The notes under the pieces: generated by a model
Database searches by the model: none
What the model was told of the DNA's origin: nothing
Seen by the model: only the letters and a program-made list of their open reading frames with translations
From: Macrostomum lignano
Lineage: Eukaryota
Length of the DNA: 64,000 nt
NCBI GenBank assembly: GCA_002269645.1
Contig: NIVC01002509.1
Span: 65,803 to 129,802 of the forward strand
Reading direction: 5' to 3'
Shown: positions 1-63,400 of the stretch, in pieces
Layout: each line of letters starts with the position of its first letter
How positions within the stretch are numbered: position 1 is the stretch's first letter
Translations under genes and position numbers: made by a program

Positions 1-500
1 TTCAGTAATCCATGAGCAGCTTCCAGTCCAGATTCTATATCTTAGAGATTCAGTAATCCATGAGCAGCTTCCAGTCCAGATTCTATATCTTAGAGATTCA
101 GTAATCCATGAGCAGCTTCCAGTCCAGATTCTATATCTTAGAGATTCAGTAATCCATGAGCAGCTTCCAGTCCAGATTCTATATCTTAGAGATTCAGTAA
201 TCCATGAGCAGCTTCCAGTCCAGATTCTAAATCTTAGAGATTCAGTAATCCATGAGCAGCTTCCAGTCCAGATTCTATATCTTAGAGATTCAGTAATCCA
301 TGAGCAGCTTCCAGTCCAGATTCTTTATCTTAGAGATTCAGTAATCCATGAGCAGCTTCCAGTCCAGATTCTATATCTTAGAGATTCAGTAATCCATGAG
401 CAGCTTCCAGTCTAGATTCTTTATCTAAGAGATTCAGTAATCCATGAGCAGCTTCCAGTCCAGATTCTATATCTAAGAGATTTAATAATCCATGAGCAGC
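1..500. repeat. 48-bp minisatellite (TTCAGTAATCCATGAGCAGCTTCCAGTCCAGATTCTATATCTTAGAGA), about 10 copies, truncated by the window edge; intronic to the + strand gene
   Basis: Direct inspection shows period 48. The array ends about 45 nt before the AG acceptor at 543-544. Confidence 0.97.
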
Positions 501-544
501 GTTCAATCGTTTGAAATTGTGCGCACGTATTTAATTTGCTACAG

Positions 545-874
545 GAGCAACAGCAACCGCAACAGCAGCAGCAGCCGCCGCCGCGCCCTCCGCCGCCATC
601 GGTGCCGGCCTACAGCCAGCAGCAGCCGCAGCCGCAGCAGCCGCCAATGCCCGGCTACCCGATGTACCCGCCCTACTCCGGAGCTCCCGGTGGCGGCTAC
701 CCGCCAGCTTACCAGCCGCCAGCCCCGGGCTACCCGCCCGGCTATCCGCAGCAGCCGCCAATGCCCAGCTATCCAGGCTATCCCGGATATCCGGCTTACC
801 CCGGGGCTAATCCCTATCCGACTTATCCCGGCTACCCGGCCTATCCGGGCTATCCACAGCAGCCGCCGCGTTGA
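545..874 (+). CDS. Terminal coding exon of a gene with a Pro/Gln/Tyr-rich C-terminus; probably the ALIX/PDCD6IP-like proline-rich domain
   Basis: Acceptor ttaatttgctacag| at 544, phase 0, TGA at 872-874, AATAAA at 1092-1097. The peptide has PPPRPPPP followed later by PYPTYPGYPAY, resembling the PARPPPP and PPYPTYPGYPGY (ALG-2-binding) motifs of human ALIX. Low complexity makes the identity uncertain, and upstream exons are outside the window. Confidence 0.6.
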   Translation, partial: EQQQPQQQQQPPPRPPPPSVPAYSQQQPQPQQPPMPGYPMYPPYSGAPGGGYPPAYQPPAPGYPPGYPQQPPMPSYPGYPGYPAYPGANPYPTYPGYPAYPGYPQQPPR

Positions 875-3455: not shown

Positions 3456-4075
3456 TATACCCTGGCATCCCTCTAGATACCCTGGCATCCCTCTAGATAC
3501 CCTGACATCCCTCTAGATACCCTGACATCCCTCTAGATACCCTGGCATCCCTCTAGATACCCTGACATCCCTCTAGATACCCTGACATCCCTCTAGATAC
3601 TCTGACATCCCTCTAGATACTCTGAAATCCCTCTAGATACCCTGACATCCCTCTAGATACCCTGACATCTCTCTAGATACCATGACATCCCTCTAGATAC
3701 CCTGACATCCCTCTAGATACTCTGACATCTCTCTAGATACCATGACATCCCTCTAGATACCCTGACATCCCTCTAGATACTCTGACATCTCTCTAGATAC
3801 CCTGAAATCCCTCTAGATACCCTGACATCCCTCTAGATACTCTGACATCCCTCTAGATACTCTGACATCCCTCTAGATACCCTGACATCCCTCTAGATAC
3901 CCTGACATCCCTCTAGATACTCTGACATCTCTCTAGATACCCTGAAATCCCTCTAGATACCCTGACATCCCTCTAGATACTCTGACATCCCTCTAGATAC
4001 CCTGACATCCCTCTAGATACCCTGACATCCCTCTAGATACTCTGACATCCCTCTAGATACCCCAGCATCCCTCTA
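3456..4075. repeat. 20-bp minisatellite (CTCTAGATACCCTGACATCC), about 30 copies
   Basis: Direct inspection; period 20. Confidence 0.97.
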
Positions 4076-4251
4076 CGATACATAAAAATCCTAGATAACT
4101 GGAAGCTCTGGCAAAGACCCAGCTACATTTCTAATAGCTGCAGAAAGCAGATCATTCTATCCAGACGAAACCTAATCATTAATCGAATGACGCAACGTTA
4201 ATCAACAAAAACGAGTTCAGCAAACACTTTAAATGTCCAATTCAATCCAAA

Positions 4252-4932
4252 TCACTCTCGCTTGTTAGCGCCAGCGGCCTGCTCGGCTCTCTCCTTGGTA
4301 TCCAAGGCGGCCATGTTGACGCTGGCAACGTAGAGATGCACAGCGCTAATAGCGCTTTTAACCGCCGCCACGGGAAAGGTGAGAACGGCTAGCGTTGGCA
4401 CGAGGCCAAAGCCTAGCAGTATTGGTCCCCTAGTGAAGTGCATCAGGTACAGAGCAGCATAGAACAGCTCATTACCGGCGCACATGCAGAATAGCACAAC
4501 CCGACTATTGTAATAATAATATAGAATCGGATTAGAGCTCAAATCCACCGCCTTATGACTCTGAGCACCGCGCACAATAGACGAATGCAGATGCAGCCAA
4601 TGGCTGGCAATGTCCAGTGCGGCGCTCAATTGAAATGCCAGCATATATCTGGGATAGAACTGGGCTAGCACGAATAGCAGGCACATTGTGGCGCACCTGT
4701 CAGTCAGCATGTCCAGCATAGCGCCGAATTTAGTAGACTGATTCAGCAGTCTGGCCGCGTGGCCATCGAATGCGTCTAGCAGGCCGGATAGCAGATAGGC
4801 CCACGTGGCCCTCACGTGGTCGAATGGCATGTAATAGCAGGCCAGTATGGCTAACAGGATTCTGGCGTAGCCAATCAGATTGGGCACGAATAGGAATACA
4901 TTCTGTTCCGAATAGTTTGACGAGCTTAGCAT
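4252..4932 (-). CDS. CDIPT: CDP-diacylglycerol--inositol 3-phosphatidyltransferase (phosphatidylinositol synthase), 226 aa, uninterrupted CDS
   Basis: N-terminal NVFLFVPNLIGYARI, the CDP-alcohol phosphotransferase motif DAFDGHAARLLNQSTKFGAMLDMLTD, and the ASHWLH and FCMCAGNELFY motifs typical of PIS. Confidence 0.96.
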   Translation of the reverse strand: MLSSSNYSEQNVFLFVPNLIGYARILLAILACYYMPFDHVRATWAYLLSGLLDAFDGHAARLLNQSTKFGAMLDMLTDRCATMCLLFVLAQFYPRYMLAFQLSAALDIASHWLHLHSSIVRGAQSHKAVDLSSNPILYYYYNSRVVLFCMCAGNELFYAALYLMHFTRGPILLGFGLVPTLAVLTFPVAAVKSAISAVHLYVASVNMAALDTKERAEQAAGANKRE

Positions 4933-4955
4933 GGTTACAGTTGGTTGATTGCAAG

Positions 4956-4975
4956 CTGAAGTATGCCGTTAGGTA
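4956..4975 (-). promoter_or_regulatory. Branch point plus 3' splice acceptor (CTAAC...TACTTCAG|) 23 nt upstream of the PIS ATG; cis 5'-UTR intron or SL trans-splice acceptor
   Basis: The minus strand reads acctaacggcatacttcag|cttgcaatcaaccaactgtaaccATG. Confidence 0.6.
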
Positions 4976-5059
4976 ATGAGTTTGCGCCTGATGCACTGCA
5001 TTTTACTGCTAATCACTCAGATTTCTACTATTTGTAGCGATTCGATATCCATCTTTTTG

Positions 5060-5530
5060 GTCTGTTGTGGATTCTTCTATCTTTTGTGGATTCTTGTTGG
5101 GCTGTTGTGGATTTTTGTTGGTCTAATGTGGATTCTTATCTATCTGTTGTGGATTCTTGTTGGTCTGCTGTGAGTTTTTGTATAGCGGATTCTTGTTGGT
5201 CAGTTGTGGATTCTTATTGGTCTGTTGTGGATTCTTATCAATCTGTTGTGGATTCTTGTTGGTCTGTTGTTGATTCTTATCAATCCGTTGTGGGTTCTTG
5301 TTGGTCTGTTGTGGATAACTGCTGTGGATTTTTGCTAATCCGTTGTGAATTATTGTTTATCTGTTGTGGATTCTTGTTTATCTGTAGCAGATTCTTGTTG
5401 GTCTGTTGTGGAATCTTGTTTATCGGTCTGTTGTGGATTCTTGTTGGCCGGTCTGTTGTGGAATCTTGTTTATCTGTTGTGCATTTTTTCTCCTTTCTTG
5501 GTGGTCTTTTGTTGAATCTGACGTTCTGTT
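5060..5530. repeat. Degenerate minisatellite, about 21-bp unit (CTGTTGTGGATTCTTGTTGGT-like)
   Basis: Recurrent ctgttgtggattctt motif; accounts for ORFs 4976-5173, 5065-5625 and 5280-5609. Confidence 0.9.
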
Positions 5531-6040
5531 GTGACATTTGTGGCTTGTATTTCCAAAGCTCATCTCTAAACAAAAGTAAAGTAATGCGACTTACAAAAAA
5601 ATCAGACATTCTGCAACAGTTTTAAAAGTATATATATCTCGTACTTTCTTATTCAAAAAGTTTGCAAGGCATTTTCCACTGCCGCTGTCACAGGAGGGCC
5701 CGCACGAACAAAGAAAACGTGTTGCAATATCACGGATATGGACGAACAGCAGAAATTAATTGCGTCAAATTTTTTGTCAAATTAGATGCTCCCCAAAAAA
5801 CAGAATGCTCGAAGAAACTTCTTTGAGTCGGAAGCAAATAAAAGTCTCTACTTGCTACTCACAGTAAGAAACAAATGCAGCAATTGTCAAATTAAACTAT
5901 AAATAAATTTTACATTGTGAACATATTCGACTACATTGCAGCATTTTGAAGACAAGTAAAAGAGTGAATACATATCGCAGTACGCACAGACACGCGCACC
6001 AAGTCCCGAGACTACAACTCATTAGTTCATGCCAAGTTCC

Positions 6041-9000
6041 TTATGCGATTTGCATTATCAGAGGACGCCACGGCCTGAAAACAGGGAGGATGAAAGTAAA
6101 GCCATTATTTATTAATAAAAAAATCAAACATTTGGATGACAGAGAAAAAAATTATAAAGAATGGGCAATTAATAGAAGTAGAAAGTTTTATATGGAGTCT
6201 TTTTTGCCGATATGTAGCGCAATAAAGTATTTTACGCCAAAATACAGATTTTTTGGGTTGAAAGAATGACAGACGCAAGGCACAGATTTAGAACGGGATG
6301 ACAGACTGAATCAAGCCCATTTCATAGCACACCTGGAACTCACAGAGCTCATATCCTAGCACACCTGGAACTCACAGAGCTCATATCCTAGCACACCTGG
6401 AACTCACAGAGCTCATATCCTAGCACACCTGGAACTCACAGAGCTCATATCCTAGCACACCTGGAACTCACAGAGCTCATATCCTAGCACACCTGGAACT
6501 CACAGAGCTCATATCCTAGCACACCTGGAACTCACAGAGCTCATATCCTAGCACACCTGGAACTCACAGAGCTCATATCCTAGCACACCTGGAACTCACA
6601 GAGCTCATATCCTAGCACACCTGGAACTCACAGAGCTCATATCCTAGCACACCTGGAACTCACAGAGCTCATATCCTAGCACACCTGGAACTCACAGAGC
6701 TCATATCCTAGCACACCTGGAACTCACAGAGCTCATATCCTAGCACACCTGGAACTCACATAGCTCATATCCTAGCACACCTGGAACTCACAGAGCTCAT
6801 ATCCTAGCACACCTGGAACTCACAGAGCTCATATCCTAGCACACCTGGAAATTTGTGCACAGCAAAACCAGTTGAATTTGTGACAGCAATTAAAAGTAAC
6901 TGGAAACTTAAAAGGCAAAGGATGCACCGAAGACGGATAGAAAGAAGTCACTGTCTAATTGAAAATCTAATAGAGAAAAACAGTTACCTGTTGCTGGTGT
7001 GCAAAAGTGCGTCTAAACTGGTTTGGGGTGACTTGGCATTTATTTTCAACGAAGCGTTGAATAGAGATGAGTAACTATAATAGACAAAACGTATCTACTA
7101 GTTGGTTTCTTAGCATTCAACTCTTAACGATATGAGCGGACACTGAAAGCATGGGTTAATTAATAATGTTATTGGATTAAGAAAGCACCGAAACTCAACA
7201 ATTATATTATTAGTTAGTACTATTAGTAGCTACGAGCATAAAAGCAAAACAAAAAAAACAGTAAGTTTGATTAATTTTCCATTAAACTTTTCAGTCTAAA
7301 CCAAAGATACTAAAATAACAAAAATATTTGCGTGTAAGCTACTTTCAGTTCAGTAGAAAGCTTACGAAAAGTAAGCATTTTAATGTATTTTTATAGCCAA
7401 AAGGCTCATTTATTGGCTCTTACCCCCCCCCCCGCTTCGCCCAAATTTTATTGCCTTTCTCAGAATTCCAACCTAAAGTTGCCATGTACATTTCAGTGGA
7501 CTGGCTAATGTAGATTATTGTTGTTTAGCGAGTTGTTTACGCCTGCAAGCTTGGGCTTCTAAACTTGTTAAAGTCATTGCAGCTGCCTTTATTTCTATAG
7601 AATAGCTTATGTATTCTTTTTTGCTACTGAACAGAAAGTAGAAAGCAGTTTTACTAAGTAAGTGGTCCATCTAGTTATTTTAGTATCTGTGGTCTAAACT
7701 ATTTCTGTTCAAATTTGGCAATCTTTAAAAATATATTATAATCAGCTTACTAACAGTAGGCGGTACGTAAATCAAATGATTAATAAACATTTAAAAACTA
7801 ATTGTGCCAACAAAACAGCATCAAATAAAATGCAACAGCTATGAAAAGCACTTACCGAGAATGCTCAAAGGCATAATCAGCTTCATTAAAGGAAGCTGTG
7901 ACGCAATTCGACCAACGATCCAATACCAGTCCAACAGATAAATGACTCAAATCAAAATAAGAAGTAGAATGAAACAGTATGTTCATGTACACCACTATGT
8001 ATTCGGAGGCGGCAAAATAGGTGTACACTGAAATTTTTGCAGAAAAATAAATGCCTTTGTTGACACTAAAAATTTATCTAAAACGATTTTAGTTTTAAAA
8101 ACTCATAATAAATCCGCTTACTAAGCCGTTCGCACAGCGCCTGATGTCGCATATAAAAGTACACAGCCAGAGCCGTGCTCAGACAGTAAACGCCAAAGCT
8201 GATCAACTTGATATAAAACGACTGCGGACATGAATTCGTGACAAATTTGATATATTTAGGCTTAGTCTGTTGACAGCAACTGTGAAATCCAAATTGCTTT
8301 TCTCTTATCTACCCTCTGCCTGTCTCTCCCCTACCCTCTGCCTGTCTCTCCCCTACCCTCTGCCTGTCTCTCCCCTACCCTCTGCCTGTCTCTCCCCTAC
8401 CCTCTGCCTGTCTCTCCCCTACCCTCTGCCTGTCTCTCCCCTACCCTCTGCCTGTCTCTCCCCTACCCTCTGCCTGTCTCTCCCCTACCCTCTGCCTGTC
8501 TCTCCCCTACCCTCTGCCTGTCTCTCCCCTACCCTCTGCCTGTCTCTCCCCTACCCTCTGCCTGTCTCTCCCCTACCCTCTGCCTATCTCTTCCCTACCA
8601 TCCGCCTGTCTCTATTTCACCCGCTGCCTGGGCTACAAAAGTACAATTAGCACGCGGCCGAAGCACGCAGACGCACTCGAGTGGAAATCAGCTGTCGATC
8701 TGTCAGCTTCTGTCGACTCCGCAGTCGGCAGCAGACTCTCAAGTGCAGCAGCATGTACACAGATGAAGATATCAGGAATATGGCGAAACAGTTGCGATGG
8801 ATGGCTGAAATGAGCATGTGGCAGGAGAATAGTTAATCCGAGGTACTGCCGAAAGGACTGAAGCTTAAGGACCTCAATTGGGGCAGCACTATGGCTAGTG
8901 AGCACCAAAGGACACACACGGGCAACAAAGGACACACACCGTTGCTTCTAACGGACACATGGCTTATCTCCAAAGGACACACAGAGGCCATCAATAGACA

Positions 9001-11437
9001 CATTCAAAAGCCATCAATAGACGCATTCAGAAGCCATCAATAGACACCTGCAGAGGCCATCAAAAGACACCTGCAGAGGCCATCAAAAGACACCTGCAGA
9101 GGCCATCAAAAGACACCTGCAGAGGCCATCAAAAGACACCTGCAGAGGCCATCAAAAGACACATGCAGAGGCCATCAAAAGACACTTGCAGAGGCCATCA
9201 AAAGACACCTGCAGAGGCCATCAAAAGACACATGCAGAGGCCATCAAAAGACACTTGCAGAGGCCATCAAAAGACACCTGCAGAGGCCATCAAAAGACAC
9301 TTGCAGAGGCCATCAAAAGACACATGCAGAGGCCATCAAAAGACACTTGCAGAGGCCATCAAAAGACACCTGCAGAGGCCATCAAAAGACACTTGCAGAG
9401 GCCATCAAAAGACACCTGCAGAGGCCATCAAAAGACACATGCAGAGGCCATCAAAAGACACTTGCAGAGGCCATCAAAAGACACCTGCAGAGGCCATCGA
9501 AAGACACTTGCAGAGGCCATCAAAAGACACATGCAGAGGCCATCAAAAGACACTTGCAGAGGCCATCAAAAGACACCTGCAGAGGCCATCAAAAGACACT
9601 TGCAGAGGCCATCAAAAGACACTTGCAGAGGCCATCAAAAGACACCTGCAGAGGCCATCAAAAGACACTTGCAGAGGCCATCAAAAGACACATGCAGAGG
9701 CCATCAAAAGACACCTGCAGAGGCCATCAAAAGACACCTGCAGAGGCCATCAAAAGACACTTGCAGAGGCCATCAAAAGACACTTGCAGAGGCCATCAAA
9801 AGACACATGCAGAGGCCATCAAAAGACACATGCAGAGGCCATCAAAAGACACTTGCAGAGGCCATCAAAAGACACTTGCAGAGGCCATCAAAAGACACAT
9901 GCAGAGGCCATCAAAAGACACCTGTAGAGGACACAAGGACACCAAGTTATGAAACTCACGAAAATTATCAGACGAAGACACAACAGACAGGCCGAACAGA
10001 GCGGCCAATTCCAAGCAGTTGACAGCAAAATGACCGCCAGTCAAACAGCAGTCCTGGTCGCGCCGGAGGCGGCCGCGAATTTCCTGATAATAGGCCATGG
10101 CCAGGATGAGTCGAAGGGCGCAGCTAACGGTGAGGAACAGGGACCAGATCTGCTTCTCGGGGCTGGTCTCACCGACTGCAGCGCTGATTGATGGCAGGTA
10201 ATTGGCGGTCTGTAATAGGCAATAATCAGTCAGCTGCGATAGTAGATAGATATGCAATCAACGATAGCTTATTAAGTTATTACATATGAAAACTGCGACA
10301 TGTCAAATAGCAAAAAACGGCATATCTAAGATTATTTAAATATCGATATTAATCATCTACAGATAGATTATTCTTTACTGACTGATAATCAGCTACTTAT
10401 CGATAATCAGCTACCTACCGATAATAATCTACGTATCGATAATTGGCTTTATATCGATGATCAGCAACATGTCGATAATTATATACACATAAGTAATTAG
10501 CTACATATTGATTATCGATTCATTTTCGAAAAATTTTACACATTGATCAGCTACATATAGATTATCAGCTACATATCGATTATCAGCTACATATCGATTA
10601 TCAGCTACATATCGATTATCAGCTACACATTGATTATCAGCTACATATTGATTATCAGCTACATATTGATTATCAGCTACATATTGATTATCAGCTACAT
10701 ATTGATTATCAGCTACATATTGATTATCAGCTACATATCGATTATCAGCTACATATTGATTATCAGCTACATATTGATTATCAGCTACATATAGATTATC
10801 AGCTACATATTGATTATCAGCTACATATAGATTATCAGCTACATATTGATTATCAGCTACATATTGATTATCAGCTACATATTGATTATCAGCTACATAT
10901 AGATTATCAGCTACATATTGATTATCAGCTACATATAGATTATCAGCTACATATTGATTATCAGCTACATATTGATTATCAGCTACATATTGATTATCAG
11001 CTACATATTGATTATCAGCTACATATTGATTATCAGCTACATATAGATTATCAGCTACATATAGATTATCAGCTACATATAGATTATCAGCTACATATTG
11101 ATTATCAGCTACATATTGATTATCAGCTACATATTGATTATCAGCTACATATAGATTATCAGCTACATATAGATTATCAGCTACATTAATATTAAGTGTA
11201 AAAATAAATTTGGCACAGAAACCCTACAATAATCGGCTAAAGTTTTAACAAAGTTAAAAAGCATACAACTACGGCTCTCCTAACCAACTGACAGTCAATA
11301 GAAATAAATCTCACCTGACAGTGCGTGGCCAAACTGTGATCCGAGTGATAAGCAACCGAGTAGGTGACACAGATTGCCAAAGCCGATGCGGGCAGAACAA
11401 CTGATAGAGCTGATACTTGGCTAACACTGTACGACAT
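6041..11437 (-). CDS. PGAP2: Post-GPI attachment to proteins factor 2 (Frag1/DRAM/Sfk1 family), 268 aa, 6 coding exons: 11437-11315, 10209-9960, 8804-8677, 8221-8122, 8027-7856, 6074-6041
   Basis: All junctions are GT-AG with consistent phases (0,1,0,1,2); total 807 nt. The spliced protein contains ATHCQ|TANYLPSISAAVG, VNCLELAALFGLSVVSSSDNF|PIHRNCFAIFL, AVYFYMRHQALCERL|MYTYFAASEYIVVYMNILFH, colinear with the PGAP2 motifs (ATHCxVxNYLPSvSxAIG; VSSSEdfxIHEnaF; YfRHNxYCE; FAxxEYxVVxxNxxFH). The last short exon is the least certain. Confidence 0.92.
6325..6851. repeat. 32-bp minisatellite (TAGCACACCTGGAACTCACAGAGCTCATATCC), about 16 nearly identical copies, PGAP2 intron 5
   Basis: Direct inspection. 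Confidence 0.97.
8306..8610. repeat. 22-bp pyrimidine-rich minisatellite (ACCCTCTGCCTGTCTCTCCCCT), about 13 copies, PGAP2 intron 3
   Basis: Direct inspection; explains ORF 8270-8650. Confidence 0.96.
8985..9930. repeat. 23-bp minisatellite (GCAGAGGCCATCAAAAGACAC[C/T/A]T), about 40 copies, PGAP2 intron 2
   Basis: Direct inspection; explains the three overlapping QRPSKDTCRGH ORFs. Confidence 0.97.
10545..11187. repeat. 18-bp minisatellite (GATTATCAGCTACATAT[T/C/A]), about 35 copies, PGAP2 intron 1
   Basis: Direct inspection; degenerate copies extend leftward to about 10380. Confidence 0.96.
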
Positions 11438-11634: not shown

Positions 11635-12140
11635 AGGCCAAGTGTGCATTGAGACAGAGATGGGGTGGTGGGTGGGCTAAGACTAACCTTGAGTGGATTC
11701 GAATGGCCAAGTGTACATAGAGACAGAGATGGGGTGGTGGGTGGCTGAGGCAGGGGTTCAATGGATCGGTTTAGAATAGCCAAGTGTAGATTCAGACGGA
11801 GATGGGGTGGTGGGTGGGCTAAGACTAACCTTGAGTGGATTCGAATGGCCAAGTGTACATAGAGACGGAGATGGGGTGGTGGGTGGCTGAGGCAGGGGTT
11901 CAATGAATCGGTTTAGAATAGCCAAGTGTACATTCAGACGGAGATGGGGTGGTGGGTGGGCTGAGGATGAGGTGAAGTGGGTTTAGATCATAGCCAAGTG
12001 TACATTGAGATGAGAATGGTGTGGTGGGTGGCTGAGGCAAGGGTTCAATGAACCGGTTTAGAATAACCAAGTGTACATTGAGACGGTAATGGGGTGGCGG
12101 GTGGCTGAGGCAGGGTCATTGGACCGGTTTAGAATGGCTA
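11635..12140. repeat. G-rich tandem repeat with alternating 69- and 73-bp monomers (142-bp higher-order unit), upstream of the PGAP2 ATG
   Basis: GCCAAGTGT anchors at 11637, 11706, 11779, 11848 and 11921; each monomer carries GGGGTGGTGGGTGG. Confidence 0.9.
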
Positions 12141-39177: not shown

Positions 39178-60493
<21,316 letters not shown>

Positions 60494-63400
60494 AGTGATC
60501 CTGGCAGTTCTGCTTGACAATGTCTTTTTTTCAACCGTGTGGCGGCATGAAGGCTGTAGTCTGCCCTAGGCTTGAGCCGATCGCATTACTTTAGTTTGCT
60601 ATTTCAAAATATTCCTGGAATTAAGATAGGCAATGTATATTGATTTGACCAAACACTTTATTGGCTTCTTGTATTTTATTTGATGCCCGTTTGTTGGTAG
60701 ACGTTTGTTAGTCCTTTGCAAGTGGGCCTTTTTCAACCATTGGAGGAGGCACGGGGAATGGCTATTTAGGGTTGGTAGGGGGCCAGACAGAGAGAATTGG
60801 GGAGTGGGGTGGCTGGCCATGCTGAACCAGTCAGCACGCAAGCGCTCCACCCCAACACAGTCGCCTGTTCTCACTGCTAGCTGGTCTTCCCCTTGACTCA
60901 GAGGGGGGGGGGCGGTGCGTGTTGAGAGCAAGGGCAGACAGACAGACAGGGCGTGTGAGCGAGAAGAGCGAAGGCTGAGCAAGAGGCCCCCCTTCCAGAC
61001 ACGGAGGAGTACGGACGAGATCTCTGACTTGAATTGAGGAGATTTTTGTGGAAGCTTTGAAAAACGGAGAGCGGAGGCGAGCGCCTCGGTTAAAGAGGCC
61101 TGCCTGGACTCTAGACCAGAGTCTTGAAAGACGCTAGGGTTTGCCTTTGTTTGTCAGTAAATCTTTGAGCACGCCAAGGGGCATTCTTATTTTTTCTACC
61201 TTAATATATGCCACAGCGTATTTCACTTCTTTGCTTTGCTCTCCTACTATAGCCTACTGTGAGCTCAGGCAGTCCAATGAAGGAAAGCACTACTGTCCGT
61301 TAAGTCAAGCAAACACTCTTCCTGCTCAACTACTCGTTCTCACTCTTACTCACCTCGAATGGCCCTTGATAGCTGAGTCTGTGCCCGGACAAAGTCAGTG
61401 CATTTTATATTAGAATATCGTACAGAGACCGTGTAACAACTTGCACAAAAATTTGGTCGCAATTTTGGACTCGAAGTTTTGACTGCAATTGATATTTGAA
61501 ATTTGTGCAACAGTTTGTCTGAAATTGCGTTCCAATGCAAGATATAAAAATATGCATAATCAGATCGCCTGTTACCCGTGCCACTCGTTGCGAGCTAGAA
61601 TAGTCAGTTGGCAAAGTCCACAAAACGATGGAAGCAAGACTTTAATTCGCTACAAATCGCTCGATTCCCTCAGAGTTCGTTCCACTCTTTAGGGAACGCT
61701 ATTGCGCAGATGCAGAAGAAAAGAAGAAAAATTGCTGACTTTTGCCTTCAGCCGGGCAAACTGCATATAGTAGTTTCCTCTGAGGACAGCAGATGCTTCC
61801 TAGTTATTAGGGGCCCTGTAAAGCTGGCCCGGATTTTATGGTTTAAGCTCGGCTTTTCGCACGAAATTAGCTTTTCCCAAGTTTTACGCCGGAACGTTTA
61901 ATGGCCGAGCTTGTTGCTGGATCAGGATGCAGGGAAGGAGGGATGCAGACTTACTGCTTGGGAAATGGGTGAAATAGCGAGGGATAAGAGAGGCCGTGGA
62001 ATGGATTTTGAGAGAATTTTATAAAACAGATAAAGACAGGAGCTTATCTGCATTTTAAATTTGTCTTGCAAAGCAAGACTTGGAACATGGGGAGGACCAG
62101 AGCCAAGTGGTCTAGCGTGGCGTAAAGTGGTCTTACGTACCACTAACGTACCAGTGGCCCGTGCTCGATCTCAAGTGCAGCCATACTAATTTTGCTTGGG
62201 TCTACTCGTGCAATTAACGGCCTTGAGAGCCAACCCCCAAGGCACAGTGAAGTGTACATGCCCAACGATAAATAAAGTCAGGGTCCCTGTGTACACTCCT
62301 GTGTGAACGTGTGCCTGTGTGTGTATGACTGCGTACGTGTCCGCGCTCTTGTGTGCCTGCTCAGGGAGTCGACGGAACTTGGCCAGTAATGCCTCTCGCC
62401 GGTTGTGTGACAATGTCGCTTAAGCTCCCTGCCTCATACACACACAAAAAGAACTATACTTGTTATAAAAGACCTGCGGCCACCCAATTCTAGTAGAAAC
62501 GAAACGATGCAGTGAATAGACAGACAGTATTTCAGGAAGTTTTGCGCATAGACAGACAGTATTTCAGGAAGTTTTGCGCTTCCAAACTTCCCATTCCTCG
62601 AATTTCCACTCCCCAAGCTTCTTAAAGTTTCGCCGCCAATGACTCTTTTTCCCAGGCTAAGAGACAATGAGCGTGGCAACCGAAATCTAAATGTCATGAT
62701 CTCTAGACTATAGCCAGCAAGCTTGCAATTAAAAACACAGAGGGTCTCAATGACCAACGAAAGCATAGACCGGCTTTCTCAAGCAAGCAACACGCAAGCT
62801 CACATGCGGTGTGCACCAGTCAGCAAGCAAAAGGGGCATTCGTTCAAGCGGTAACAGGAAAACGATCTAGAATGTAATTAGGTTTGTCTCCTTTGTACAA
62901 CTGCAAGGCCCTTACATGTAATTACAGCACGAGAGGGTTTTGCTGCATGGACATGACTATAGTTAACATTAAAGATAAAATTAATAGATTAATAGGAAAA
63001 ATGAGGGCCATCGATGCTTGTAATTAGCAACTGTCGCATCTACACAATTGATTCAGCGCTGTGAGGCCCCCAGGCCCATAAAACTCGTCTGAGAATGGGG
63101 AGAGAGATCGCTTTTAATAGTCAACAAAGGGAGGAATCGAATGCGAGGAGGGCACGCAGTAGTGAAGGCCCTTCGGATTTCGGTAGGGGAGTCTAGGGAC
63201 TAAGTGATTGCGTAATCGGCTGGTCTGAAGAGTTGCAGCTAGCGGGACGGGGCCTAAGCTGCCTCCATTTCGATTAGATCCCAACCGTCACCCTCTCCGA
63301 TTGCTTGTCTCGCCTCCTCATTCTCAACTAAATCTCCAAGCGAACTCTTTCCAGTAAGGCAGAGCATGAGAGCGCTACCAGAGTACGGGCCCATGGGCCC

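Follow-up and report, generated by a model that had tools for sequence, protein, structure and literature searches.

A probable two-gene spliced-leader operon of PGAP2 and phosphatidylinositol synthase in Macrostomum lignano

In the genome of Macrostomum lignano a gene for PGAP2 lies immediately upstream of a gene for phosphatidylinositol synthase (PIS/CDIPT). Are the two transcribed as a single unit that is resolved by spliced-leader (SL) trans-splicing and, if so, has their association been selected for what the products do? The stretch of DNA analysed, called the window below, is 64,000 nucleotides long; the locus is that of Mlig_3_7 contig NIVC01002509.1, and the window sequence is identical to the contig. 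An initial annotation, made from the letters alone, had proposed a dicistronic pre-mRNA that would co-regulate phosphatidylinositol (PI) supply and the lipid remodelling of GPI anchors; its guess at the organism was correct.

The two genes and the spacer between them

4252 to 4932, minus strand: PIS/CDIPT open reading frame, a single exon of 226 amino acids from the ATG at 4932
6041 to 11437, minus strand: PGAP2 (Frag1-family) gene, six coding exons (11437-11315, 10209-9960, 8804-8677, 8221-8122, 8027-7856 and 6074-6041) with a 268-amino-acid product
5612 to 6040, minus strand: probable PGAP2 3' UTR, in which AATAAG at 5653-5648 is the only poly(A)-like hexamer of the gap outside the repeat
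5052 to 5485, minus strand: degenerate intergenic minisatellite, 434 bp by TRF

Judging from its full-length Frag1 domain (Pfam PF10277, 6.2e-44, residues 8-229), the 268-residue protein encoded on the minus strand is PGAP2, of the Frag1/DRAM/Sfk1 superfamily; its best named relatives are the PGAP2 proteins of Toxocara and Dermatophagoides (E-values 1e-25 to 1e-29, coverage 79-86%), and it matches GenBank PAA57265.1 (BOX15_Mlig013600g1) with 100% identity over 100% of its length. Every intron of the splice model is GT..AG on the minus strand and the stop codon is the TAA at 6043-6041. An end for the protein at a TAA overlapping the exon-5 donor (7854-7852), which would widen the gap to 2.9 kb, was ruled out because the GenBank protein and the isoforms of a second annotation both use the exon at 6074; this last exon is common to the window model and to the ML2 isoforms P0132 and P0133. 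By the same kind of evidence the 226-residue open reading frame is CDP-diacylglycerol--inositol 3-phosphatidyltransferase (PIS/CDIPT). It matches the CDP-alcohol phosphatidyltransferase profile (PF01066, 6e-16), the catalytic motif D53-x2-D-G-x2-A-R-x8-G-x3-D-x3-D78 is present and complete as read from the translation, and named animal CDIPTs are 58-71% identical to it across more than 90% of the length. A PDB sequence search with the PGAP2 and PIS proteins gave no match. Both identities proposed in the initial annotation are therefore borne out by these domains, motifs and relatives, and its minus-strand coordinates for the PIS start (4932) and the PGAP2 stop (6041) are confirmed.

PGAP2 is upstream of PIS on the same strand with 1108 nt between the two coding sequences, in agreement with the 1.1 kb first reported. 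The only open reading frames in this gap are repeat-derived, and no gene lies on the opposite strand between PGAP2 and PIS; the pair thus has the arrangement of adjoining same-strand genes with none opposite between them that is required of M. lignano operons (PMC8629364). The same source requires a repeat-adjusted intergenic distance of less than 1 kb; subtraction of the minisatellite leaves 674 nt (1108 - 434), a figure that UTRs could only reduce. About 15% of M. lignano genes are operonic, and repeats inflate operon spacers (PMC8629364). The minisatellite had been noticed before, at about 470 bp rather than the 434 bp found by TRF. TRF reports a 21-nt unit (as well as 42 and 63) at no more than 71-72% matches, and on the sense strand it reads approximately CCACAACAGACCAACAAGAAT; alignment of the three genomic copies of the locus shows that the repeat number varies among them.

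A hexamer scan found neither AATAAA nor ATTAAA on the sense strand of the gap, as had been stated for AATAAA, and the AATAAG at 5653-5648 is also as described, with the addition of a second copy at 5218 inside the repeat. The absence of AATAAA had been taken to favour an operon, and this argument fails: the hexamer occurs at 0.73 per kb in the window, so that its absence over 1.1 kb is unremarkable, and the PIS 3' region likewise lacks it, with no AATAAA, ATTAAA or AATAAG in the 850 nt past the PIS stop. Similarly, the trans-acceptor motif [T/C]TNCAG is seen 3 times in the 1108-nt gap, where 2.9 would be expected from its density of 2.65 per kb across the window. The sequence signals of the gap do not exceed chance frequency, and that all of them stand at this level is a point against an operon. 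The PGAP2 poly(A) site would lie within 5612 to 6040; an AT-rich stretch at around 5636-5628, which follows the AATAAG, carries indels between the three aligned copies. No SL RNA gene or SL-like sequence was found within the window at up to 3 mismatches.

One transcription unit or two

The order PGAP2 then PIS on one strand is found in 3 of 3 near-identical genomic copies, on contigs NIVC01002509.1, NIVC01001209.1 and NIVC01003039.1. On contig NIVC01003039.1 (copy L003) the GenBank tags are BOX15_Mlig014367g1 for PGAP2 and BOX15_Mlig014367g2 for PIS. Names of the form MligNNNNNN.g1 and.g2 are given to genes cut from one assembled transcriptional unit by means of SL-read and poly(A)-read evidence (PMC5730564), and the tags therefore place the pair, in this paralogous copy, in one transcriptional unit. 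An assembled transcriptional unit can also come from read-through or overlapping coverage. SL-spliced M. lignano genes are enriched for conserved genes, a set into which PGAP2 and PIS fit, both being conserved. The annotated 5' end of PIS also bears on the question.

4924 to 4926, minus strand: annotation-implied 5' boundary of PIS, AG at 4926-4925 and then C at 4924

In all three copies the GenBank PIS coding sequence is 5'-partial, with 223 amino acids, a start at 4923 and an N-terminus of SSNY that lacks a methionine. It starts one base past the AG, and the boundary at 4924 is 8 nt downstream of the A of ATG 4932. Since a control gene at another locus (L004) has a 5'-partial coding sequence beginning 2 nt past a canonical TTTCAG acceptor, such 5'-partial starts abut real acceptors. 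In the independent ML2 annotation PIS begins at M35, the first in-frame ATG past the 4924 boundary. Exact-protein look-ups of both PIS forms and of protein clusters matched only the three genome contigs and UniRef entries.

The shared unit name, the 5'-partial PIS flush with an AG and the agreement with the spacing rule make the dicistronic pre-mRNA resolved by SL trans-splicing, as initially proposed, a plausible one, and PGAP2 and PIS are probably one SL-resolved transcription unit of the ordinary two-gene type of M. lignano. For the window copy, co-transcription, SL addition and the choice of acceptor are what we infer. RNA polymerase II would start upstream of PGAP2 and transcribe through both genes, with cleavage and polyadenylation of the PGAP2 mRNA at some point in 6040-5612. 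The single 35-nt M. lignano SL would then be trans-spliced to an acceptor before or just inside the PIS open reading frame, forming the 5' end of the PIS mRNA, and the spacer, filled by the repeat, would be lost as outron or intron.

Alternatively, the genes may be two independent units, with a PIS promoter in the 1.1-kb spacer or in the last PGAP2 intron and a PIS mRNA that carries a cap or, as a monocistron, receives the SL by trans-splicing; the shared unit name would then have come from read-through of PGAP2, or from unbroken RNA-seq coverage that the assembler joined. Consistent with this, around 60% of M. lignano SL-spliced genes are outside operons and the modal length of operon spacers, about 100 bp, is exceeded tenfold here (PMC8629364). 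Divergence between the copies is about 4% in the spacer against 0.6% in the PIS coding sequence, so little of the spacer is constrained, and the ATG at 4932 is in a good context, AACCATGC, with an in-frame stop upstream. However, the shared unit prefix requires at least one assembled RNA covering both genes, and the PIS coding sequence flush with an AG and the repeat-adjusted distance below the published operon threshold also weigh against separate units. Independent transcription is unlikely.

The 5' end of the PIS mRNA

4956 to 4972, minus strand: acceptor named in the initial annotation, with CTAAC at 4972-4968, then CATACTTCAG, and AG at 4957-4956
4902 to 4905, minus strand: hypothetical acceptor inside the PIS open reading frame, CAG at 4905-4903 and then AAT at 4902
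5595 to 5610, minus strand: candidate 16-nt mini-exon AATGTCTGATTTTTTT, between an acceptor and a donor

If one SL-resolved unit is accepted, the position at which the leader would be joined has to be considered. The branch point and the AG 23 nt before the PIS ATG, to which attention was first drawn, are present: the cttcAG acceptor (AG 4957-4956) would give an exon start at 4955 and fits the published trans-acceptor motif [T/C]TNCAG (PMC8629364). Its use as the acceptor is not supported, the annotated boundary being at 4924 and the region in L003 reading CAAATTTATG, in which 10 nt carry four substitutions (copy variants at 4963, 4961, 4958 and 4957) and the AG has gone. The destruction in L003 of what is the best-looking acceptor is a further point against an operon. 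The possibility that CAAATTTATG is a retro-copied SL tail was rejected, as it resembles the 3' end of the SL too weakly; the leader's 3' portion in M. lignano reads CGGTCTCTTACTGCGAAGACTCAATTTATTGCATG.

Direct SL addition at 4924 was rejected as the productive form in the window copy, because the first AUG would open a 65-codon out-of-frame reading frame; that no PIS reading frame results from the first AUG of this joining is again an observation against an operon. The only acceptor position that would put the SL-terminal ATG in frame with PIS is 4902, where the modelled product (MNVFLFVPN..., 217 aa) resembles other animal CDIPTs; this acceptor is hypothetical, and the annotation gives it no support.

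A second acceptor and donor pair, about 40 nt past the AATAAG, had also been pointed out. The ttgcAG and GTAAGT are indeed there, as an acceptor TGTTGCAG (AG 5612-5611) and a donor at 5594-5589 that flank a candidate mini-exon containing an ATG at 5609-5607; as the PIS boundary, however, the annotation gives 4924 and not this pair. The mini-exon is conserved in 3 of 3 copies, with a run at 5601-5595 of seven T in L001 and L002 and of six in L003. It is possible, if only tentatively so, that the operon transcript receives the SL at 5610 and that the mini-exon is then cis-spliced across a 640-670 nt intron holding the minisatellite, to 4955 in copies of the window type and to 4924 in those of the L003 type. 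The annotated start at 4924 would on this account be the second block of spliced SL reads rather than a trans-splice site.

Such a route would make use of a strong acceptor and a strong donor kept 16 nt apart in every copy, and the distance of about 40 nt from poly(A) signal to acceptor fits the modal spacer of about 100 bp (PMC8629364). Furthermore, in L003, where the 4955 AG is lost, the six-T run puts the mini-exon ATG in the PIS frame through 4924 (MSDFF-SSNY..., 228 aa), while in L001 and L002 the seven-T run joined to the 4955 acceptor gives a short upstream reading frame ending 2 nt before ATG 4932; the ML2 PIS model that starts at M35 carries L003-type residues. Against it, the AAG followed by C at 4924 makes a weak acceptor, lacking a pyrimidine tract, the difference between six and seven T could be a homopolymer assembly error, and on either route the PIS start is preceded by one or two AUGs.

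Two larger claims might be built on the locus, namely either that a conserved Macrostomorpha operon was selected for linking PI supply with GPI lipid remodelling or that construction of the PIS 5' end has diverged among the three paralogous copies, and we consider this pair of readings improbable. In the second of them, loss of the 4955 acceptor and of a single T in L003 may jointly shift the start codon to a 15-nt mini-exon spliced into 4924.

Pathway, gene order and other operons

The products of PIS and PGAP2 both act on inositol phospholipids in the secretory pathway. This, and the retention of the PGAP2-PIS order in 3 of 3 M. lignano copies, is what would be expected of a functional operon selected to co-regulate PI supply and GPI-anchor lipid remodelling. 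However, the three copies are recent duplicates with spacer identity of 94-96%, and so they do not amount to independent conservation. No Frag1/PGAP2-like sequence is present within 10 kb of PIS in the cestodes Echinococcus granulosus, Sparganum proliferum and Anoplocephala perfoliata, and in E. granulosus and A. perfoliata PIS has a divergent TAF2 as its upstream neighbour. Nor is there a PIS alongside the older PGAP2-like paralogue of M. lignano itself, so that in these three cestodes and at this paralogue adjacency does not extend beyond the recent duplicates. In addition, every PI pool draws on PIS, and the action of PGAP2 comes many steps further on, in the Golgi. Chance pairs of loosely related genes are expected where about 10,000 genes are operonic, as in M. 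lignano (PMC8629364). The microsynteny that was to be looked for in other flatworms is thus absent from the three cestodes, and PI/GPI co-regulation is not borne out, given this absence, that at the paralogous PGAP2-like locus and the roughly 15% of genes that are operonic; a selected functional operon is very improbable indeed. That the two genes lie together is most likely an accident of operon formation in this lineage rather than a selected PI/GPI module. An Echinococcus PIS transcript contig (L006) has no recognisable SL at its 5' end, which may be incomplete.

The closest likeness is to the other SL operons of M. lignano, which share with this locus the organism, the single 35-nt SL and the same-strand neighbours, and 75% of which are, like PGAP2-PIS, of two genes (Wudarski et al. 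2017, PMC5730564; Ustyantsev & Berezikov 2021, PMC8629364). They also resemble it in having conserved housekeeping genes and a repeat-inflated spacer that is below 1 kb after subtraction, and their.g1/.g2 naming is present in one PGAP2-PIS copy. There is no difference in kind; the PGAP2-PIS spacer is among the longer ones. The SL2-type operons of Caenorhabditis elegans are alike in being transcribed as a polycistronic pre-mRNA, with formation of the upstream 3' end coupled to trans-splicing of the downstream gene, and their genes usually have no shared pathway; they differ in that their leader is a specialised SL2 and their spacers measure about 100 nt, as against a single SL in M. lignano and, at this locus, a spacer of up to 1.1 kb that contains a minisatellite. 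Operons of parasitic flatworms, for example a trematode one with enolase second, are likewise SL-resolved dicistrons with an SL that ends in AUG, and the survey describing them mentions no PGAP2-CDIPT pair (PMC12582326). Bacterial metabolic operons are similar only in the word operon and the idea of co-transcription; PGAP2-PIS differs from them in having no translational coupling, no sign of pathway-based selection, and cistrons that would become separate monocistronic mRNAs.

The pairing, believed at first to be undescribed, is already encoded in public annotation; the papers and the PMC5816591 supplements make no mention of the locus names, CDIPT or PGAP2, and no paper that was found discusses it. 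PGAP2-PIS is probably one more among thousands of M. lignano two-gene SL operons and carries little weight beyond annotation. In this respect the GenBank PIS model is 5'-truncated and without a start codon, and the design of PIS reporters or knock-downs should take account of the PGAP2 promoter and the probable shared precursor. Were the divergence of the PIS 5' end true, the L003 changes would be a compensated pair, showing that the start codon of a trans-spliced gene had turned over; an acceptor lost in one copy only, combined with a 1-nt difference in a candidate mini-exon, would provide a small, testable case of duplicated trans-spliced genes rewiring their 5' ends.

PGAP2, PIS and their surroundings

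Pfam matches and closest named relatives bear out the names that the initial annotation gave to the two genes, phosphatidylinositol synthase (PIS, CDIPT) and the Frag1-family GPI lipid remodelling gene PGAP2. PIS matches CDP-alcohol phosphatidyltransferase (PF01066) at 6e-16, is 58-71% identical to named animal CDIPTs over more than 90% of its length, and its translation contains the complete catalytic motif, D53-x2-DG-x2-AR-x8-G-x3-D-x3-D78. PGAP2 was rebuilt from six exons; its product of 268 aa shows full-length 100% identity to GenBank PAA57265.1 (BOX15_Mlig013600g1), matches Frag1 (PF10277) at 6e-44 and has PGAP2 from Toxocara and Dermatophagoides as closest named relatives.

Features of the locus (window coordinates)
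4932-4252, minus strand: PIS ORF, ATG 4932 to stop 4252, 226 aa, single exon
11437-11315, 10209-9960, 8804-8677, 8221-8122, 8027-7856, 6074-6041, minus strand: the six rebuilt PGAP2 exons, introns all GT..AG
3457-4081, 5052-5485, 6314-6850, 8309-8613, 8982-9930, 10546-11186, 11637-12135: minisatellites

The short last PGAP2 exon sets the size of the gap to PIS; it is also present in a second, independent annotation (ML2), where the 205-aa isoforms P0132 and P0133 end in ...CERLSRGVL. In these isoforms exon 5 (7856-8027) is skipped, exon 4 being joined to 6074 in another frame; the reading then ends at a TGA (6060-6058), without the last two of the predicted helices.

Most non-coding intervals of the locus (PGAP2 introns 1, 2, 3 and 5, the upstream region, the PGAP2-PIS spacer and the region after PIS) have their own, mutually unrelated minisatellites, whose units measure 18-73 nt. 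In the three genomic copies the span of the PGAP2 CDS is 5397, 4096 and 6253 nt, which suggests that the repeats vary in copy number. Converging on PIS is the 3' end of an ALIX/BRO1-domain gene (1-874, plus strand), the stop codons lying about 3.4 kb apart; one minisatellite (1-500) overlaps the ALIX 3' end and another (3457-4081) lies between the stops. A FAT-like protocadherin gene occupies 39178-46099 and 55040-60520 on the minus strand, with one unbroken 1826-aa ORF of at least nine cadherin domains (PF00028, 6e-160) and more cadherin-coding ORFs downstream. An MFS/UNC93-like transporter gene (14801-about 22000) lies 5' of PGAP2 on the same (minus) strand; this order is repeated with a PGAP2-like gene at an older paralogous locus (L004, 5704-6246), where ML2 has fused both genes (P0127). 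The MFS-PGAP2 adjacency may be older than that of PGAP2 and PIS.

The PGAP2-PIS pair as a probable operon

PGAP2 and PIS, both on the minus strand, are 1108 nt apart. The layout of this gap bears out the initial description: about 1.1 kb with a degenerate minisatellite (5052-5485, 434 bp where about 470 bp had been noted, 21-nt unit, 71-72% matches by Tandem Repeats Finder), neither AATAAA nor ATTAAA on the sense strand of the 1108 nt, an AATAAG at 5653-5648, an acceptor-like CTTCAG giving an exon start at 4955, and an acceptor/donor pair, TGTTGCAG and GTAAGT, around 5610-5595. These signals do not exceed chance level. The trans-acceptor motif published for M. lignano, [T/C]TNCAG (PMC8629364), occurs three times in the gap against 2.9 expected from the window mean of 2.65 per kb, and at a window frequency of 0.73 per kb the lack of any AATAAA in 1.1 kb is unremarkable. 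AATAAA, ATTAAA and AATAAG are likewise all absent from the 850 nt 3' of the PIS stop. The absence of AATAAA from the gap is therefore uninformative on read-through, and the argument for an operon drawn from it is void.

The public annotation also bears on the operon reading. RNA-seq was assembled into transcriptional units, many of them multi-gene precursors, which the TBONE pipeline cut into genes at peaks of spliced-leader (SL) and poly(A) reads (Wudarski et al. 2017, PMC5730564). The genome has three near-identical copies of the pair, on contigs of 129,802, 133,928 and 123,682 bp. The window copy of PGAP2 is tagged Mlig013600g1; it is in the third copy (L003) that a shared prefix is read, PGAP2 being BOX15_Mlig014367g1 and PIS BOX15_Mlig014367g2. 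A prefix common to two unrelated genes means that some assembled RNA spanned both. Operons have been defined as same-strand neighbours with an SL-spliced downstream gene and a repeat-adjusted spacing below 1 kb, with the stress that repeats inflate operon spacers (Ustyantsev and Berezikov 2021, PMC8629364); here the adjusted spacing is at most 1108 - 434 = 674 nt, below 1 kb. By this spacing the pair fits the ordinary two-gene class of M. lignano SL operons, 75% of operons having two genes and 10,458 genes, about 15%, being operonic (PMC8629364).

Judged from sequence and annotation, the operon reading would have a good chance of being right. For the dicistronic, SL-resolved transcript first proposed, the shared Mlig014367 prefix, the 5'-partial PIS model and the 674-nt spacing make the operon itself probable; the proposed acceptors were unconfirmed. 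It is probably an SL operon of the routine two-gene kind, one that public annotation already implies and that is to that extent not undescribed, and our literature search found no paper joining PGAP2, CDIPT and operon or citing the locus names.

Pathway co-regulation and gene order

Co-regulation of PI and GPI lipid metabolism, also proposed initially, is without support. The PI in every pool comes from PIS, and PGAP2 is a late-acting Golgi factor that works on anchors already attached; among about 10,000 operonic genes, chance alone should bring together a loosely related pair. Spacer and downstream non-coding DNA diverge by 4-6.5% between the three copies, which are recent duplicates and give no independent evidence for a conserved order. 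The suggested check for PGAP2-CDIPT microsynteny was negative in three cestodes, none of which has a PGAP2 match within 10 kb of PIS (tblastn, M. lignano PGAP2 query; L004 as positive control at 4e-25). In Echinococcus granulosus and Anoplocephala perfoliata, PIS has a TAF2 in divergent orientation as its upstream neighbour; in Sparganum proliferum the roughly 9 kb upstream of PIS contain no called gene. Nor does PIS lie beside the older PGAP2-like paralogue of M. lignano, which is 55% identical and, like PGAP2 in the window, retains the upstream MFS/UNC93-like gene. Neither gene is mentioned in a survey of parasitic flatworm operons (PMC12582326).

The 5' end of PIS

In all three copies the annotated PIS CDS is 5'-partial: 223 aa, beginning SSNY without Met, with its start at 4923, one base past the AG at 4926-4925. 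Because of an in-frame TAA upstream, a start at 4955 or further upstream would give a longer partial or a complete ORF; therefore the transcript behind the annotation has to begin at 4924. The 5'-partial PGAP2-like gene of L004 served as a control, starting 2 nt past a canonical TTTCAG acceptor, which indicates that such starts mark acceptors. In ML2, PIS begins at M35, the nearest ATG in frame 3' of 4924, and a well-placed ATG (AACCATGC) lies 9 nt 5' of the annotated start (4923-4932). The public model, startless in every copy, probably needs correction.

The SL sequence was joined in silico to each candidate acceptor and the resulting ORFs were read. Joined at 4955, it gives a 7-codon uORF from the SL's AUG and then the 226-aa ORF; joined at 5610, with the 16-nt mini-exon spliced to 4955, it gives two short uORFs before the same ORF, which is valid for the copies L001 and L002. 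Directly at 4924 it yields a 65-codon out-of-frame ORF and PIS is not encoded. The annotated start could be explained by SL reads that span the mini-exon, the pipeline cutting at the second block; alternatively, several acceptors could be in use, the last cut winning. A join at 4902, a site without annotation support, would put the SL's AUG in frame and give a product of the usual length for a CDIPT, 217 aa (MNVFLFVPN...).

The particular acceptors proposed were not confirmed, and that at 4955 is destroyed in L003: in the three-copy alignment CATACTTCAG (4956-4965) reads CAAATTTATG at L003 9958-9967, four substitutions within 10 nt between identical flanks, with loss of the AG. The change creates an ATG exactly at the position of the SL's ATG in a trans-spliced mRNA. 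The mini-exon (5595-5610) has T6 in L003 and T7 otherwise; T6 puts its ATG in the PIS frame via the 4924 acceptor, and in L003 only, joining the mini-exon to 4924 opens a 228-aa ORF in frame, MSDFFSSNY.... From these differences the 5' structure of PIS is possibly copy-specific, and it is the one slightly interesting residue of the locus.
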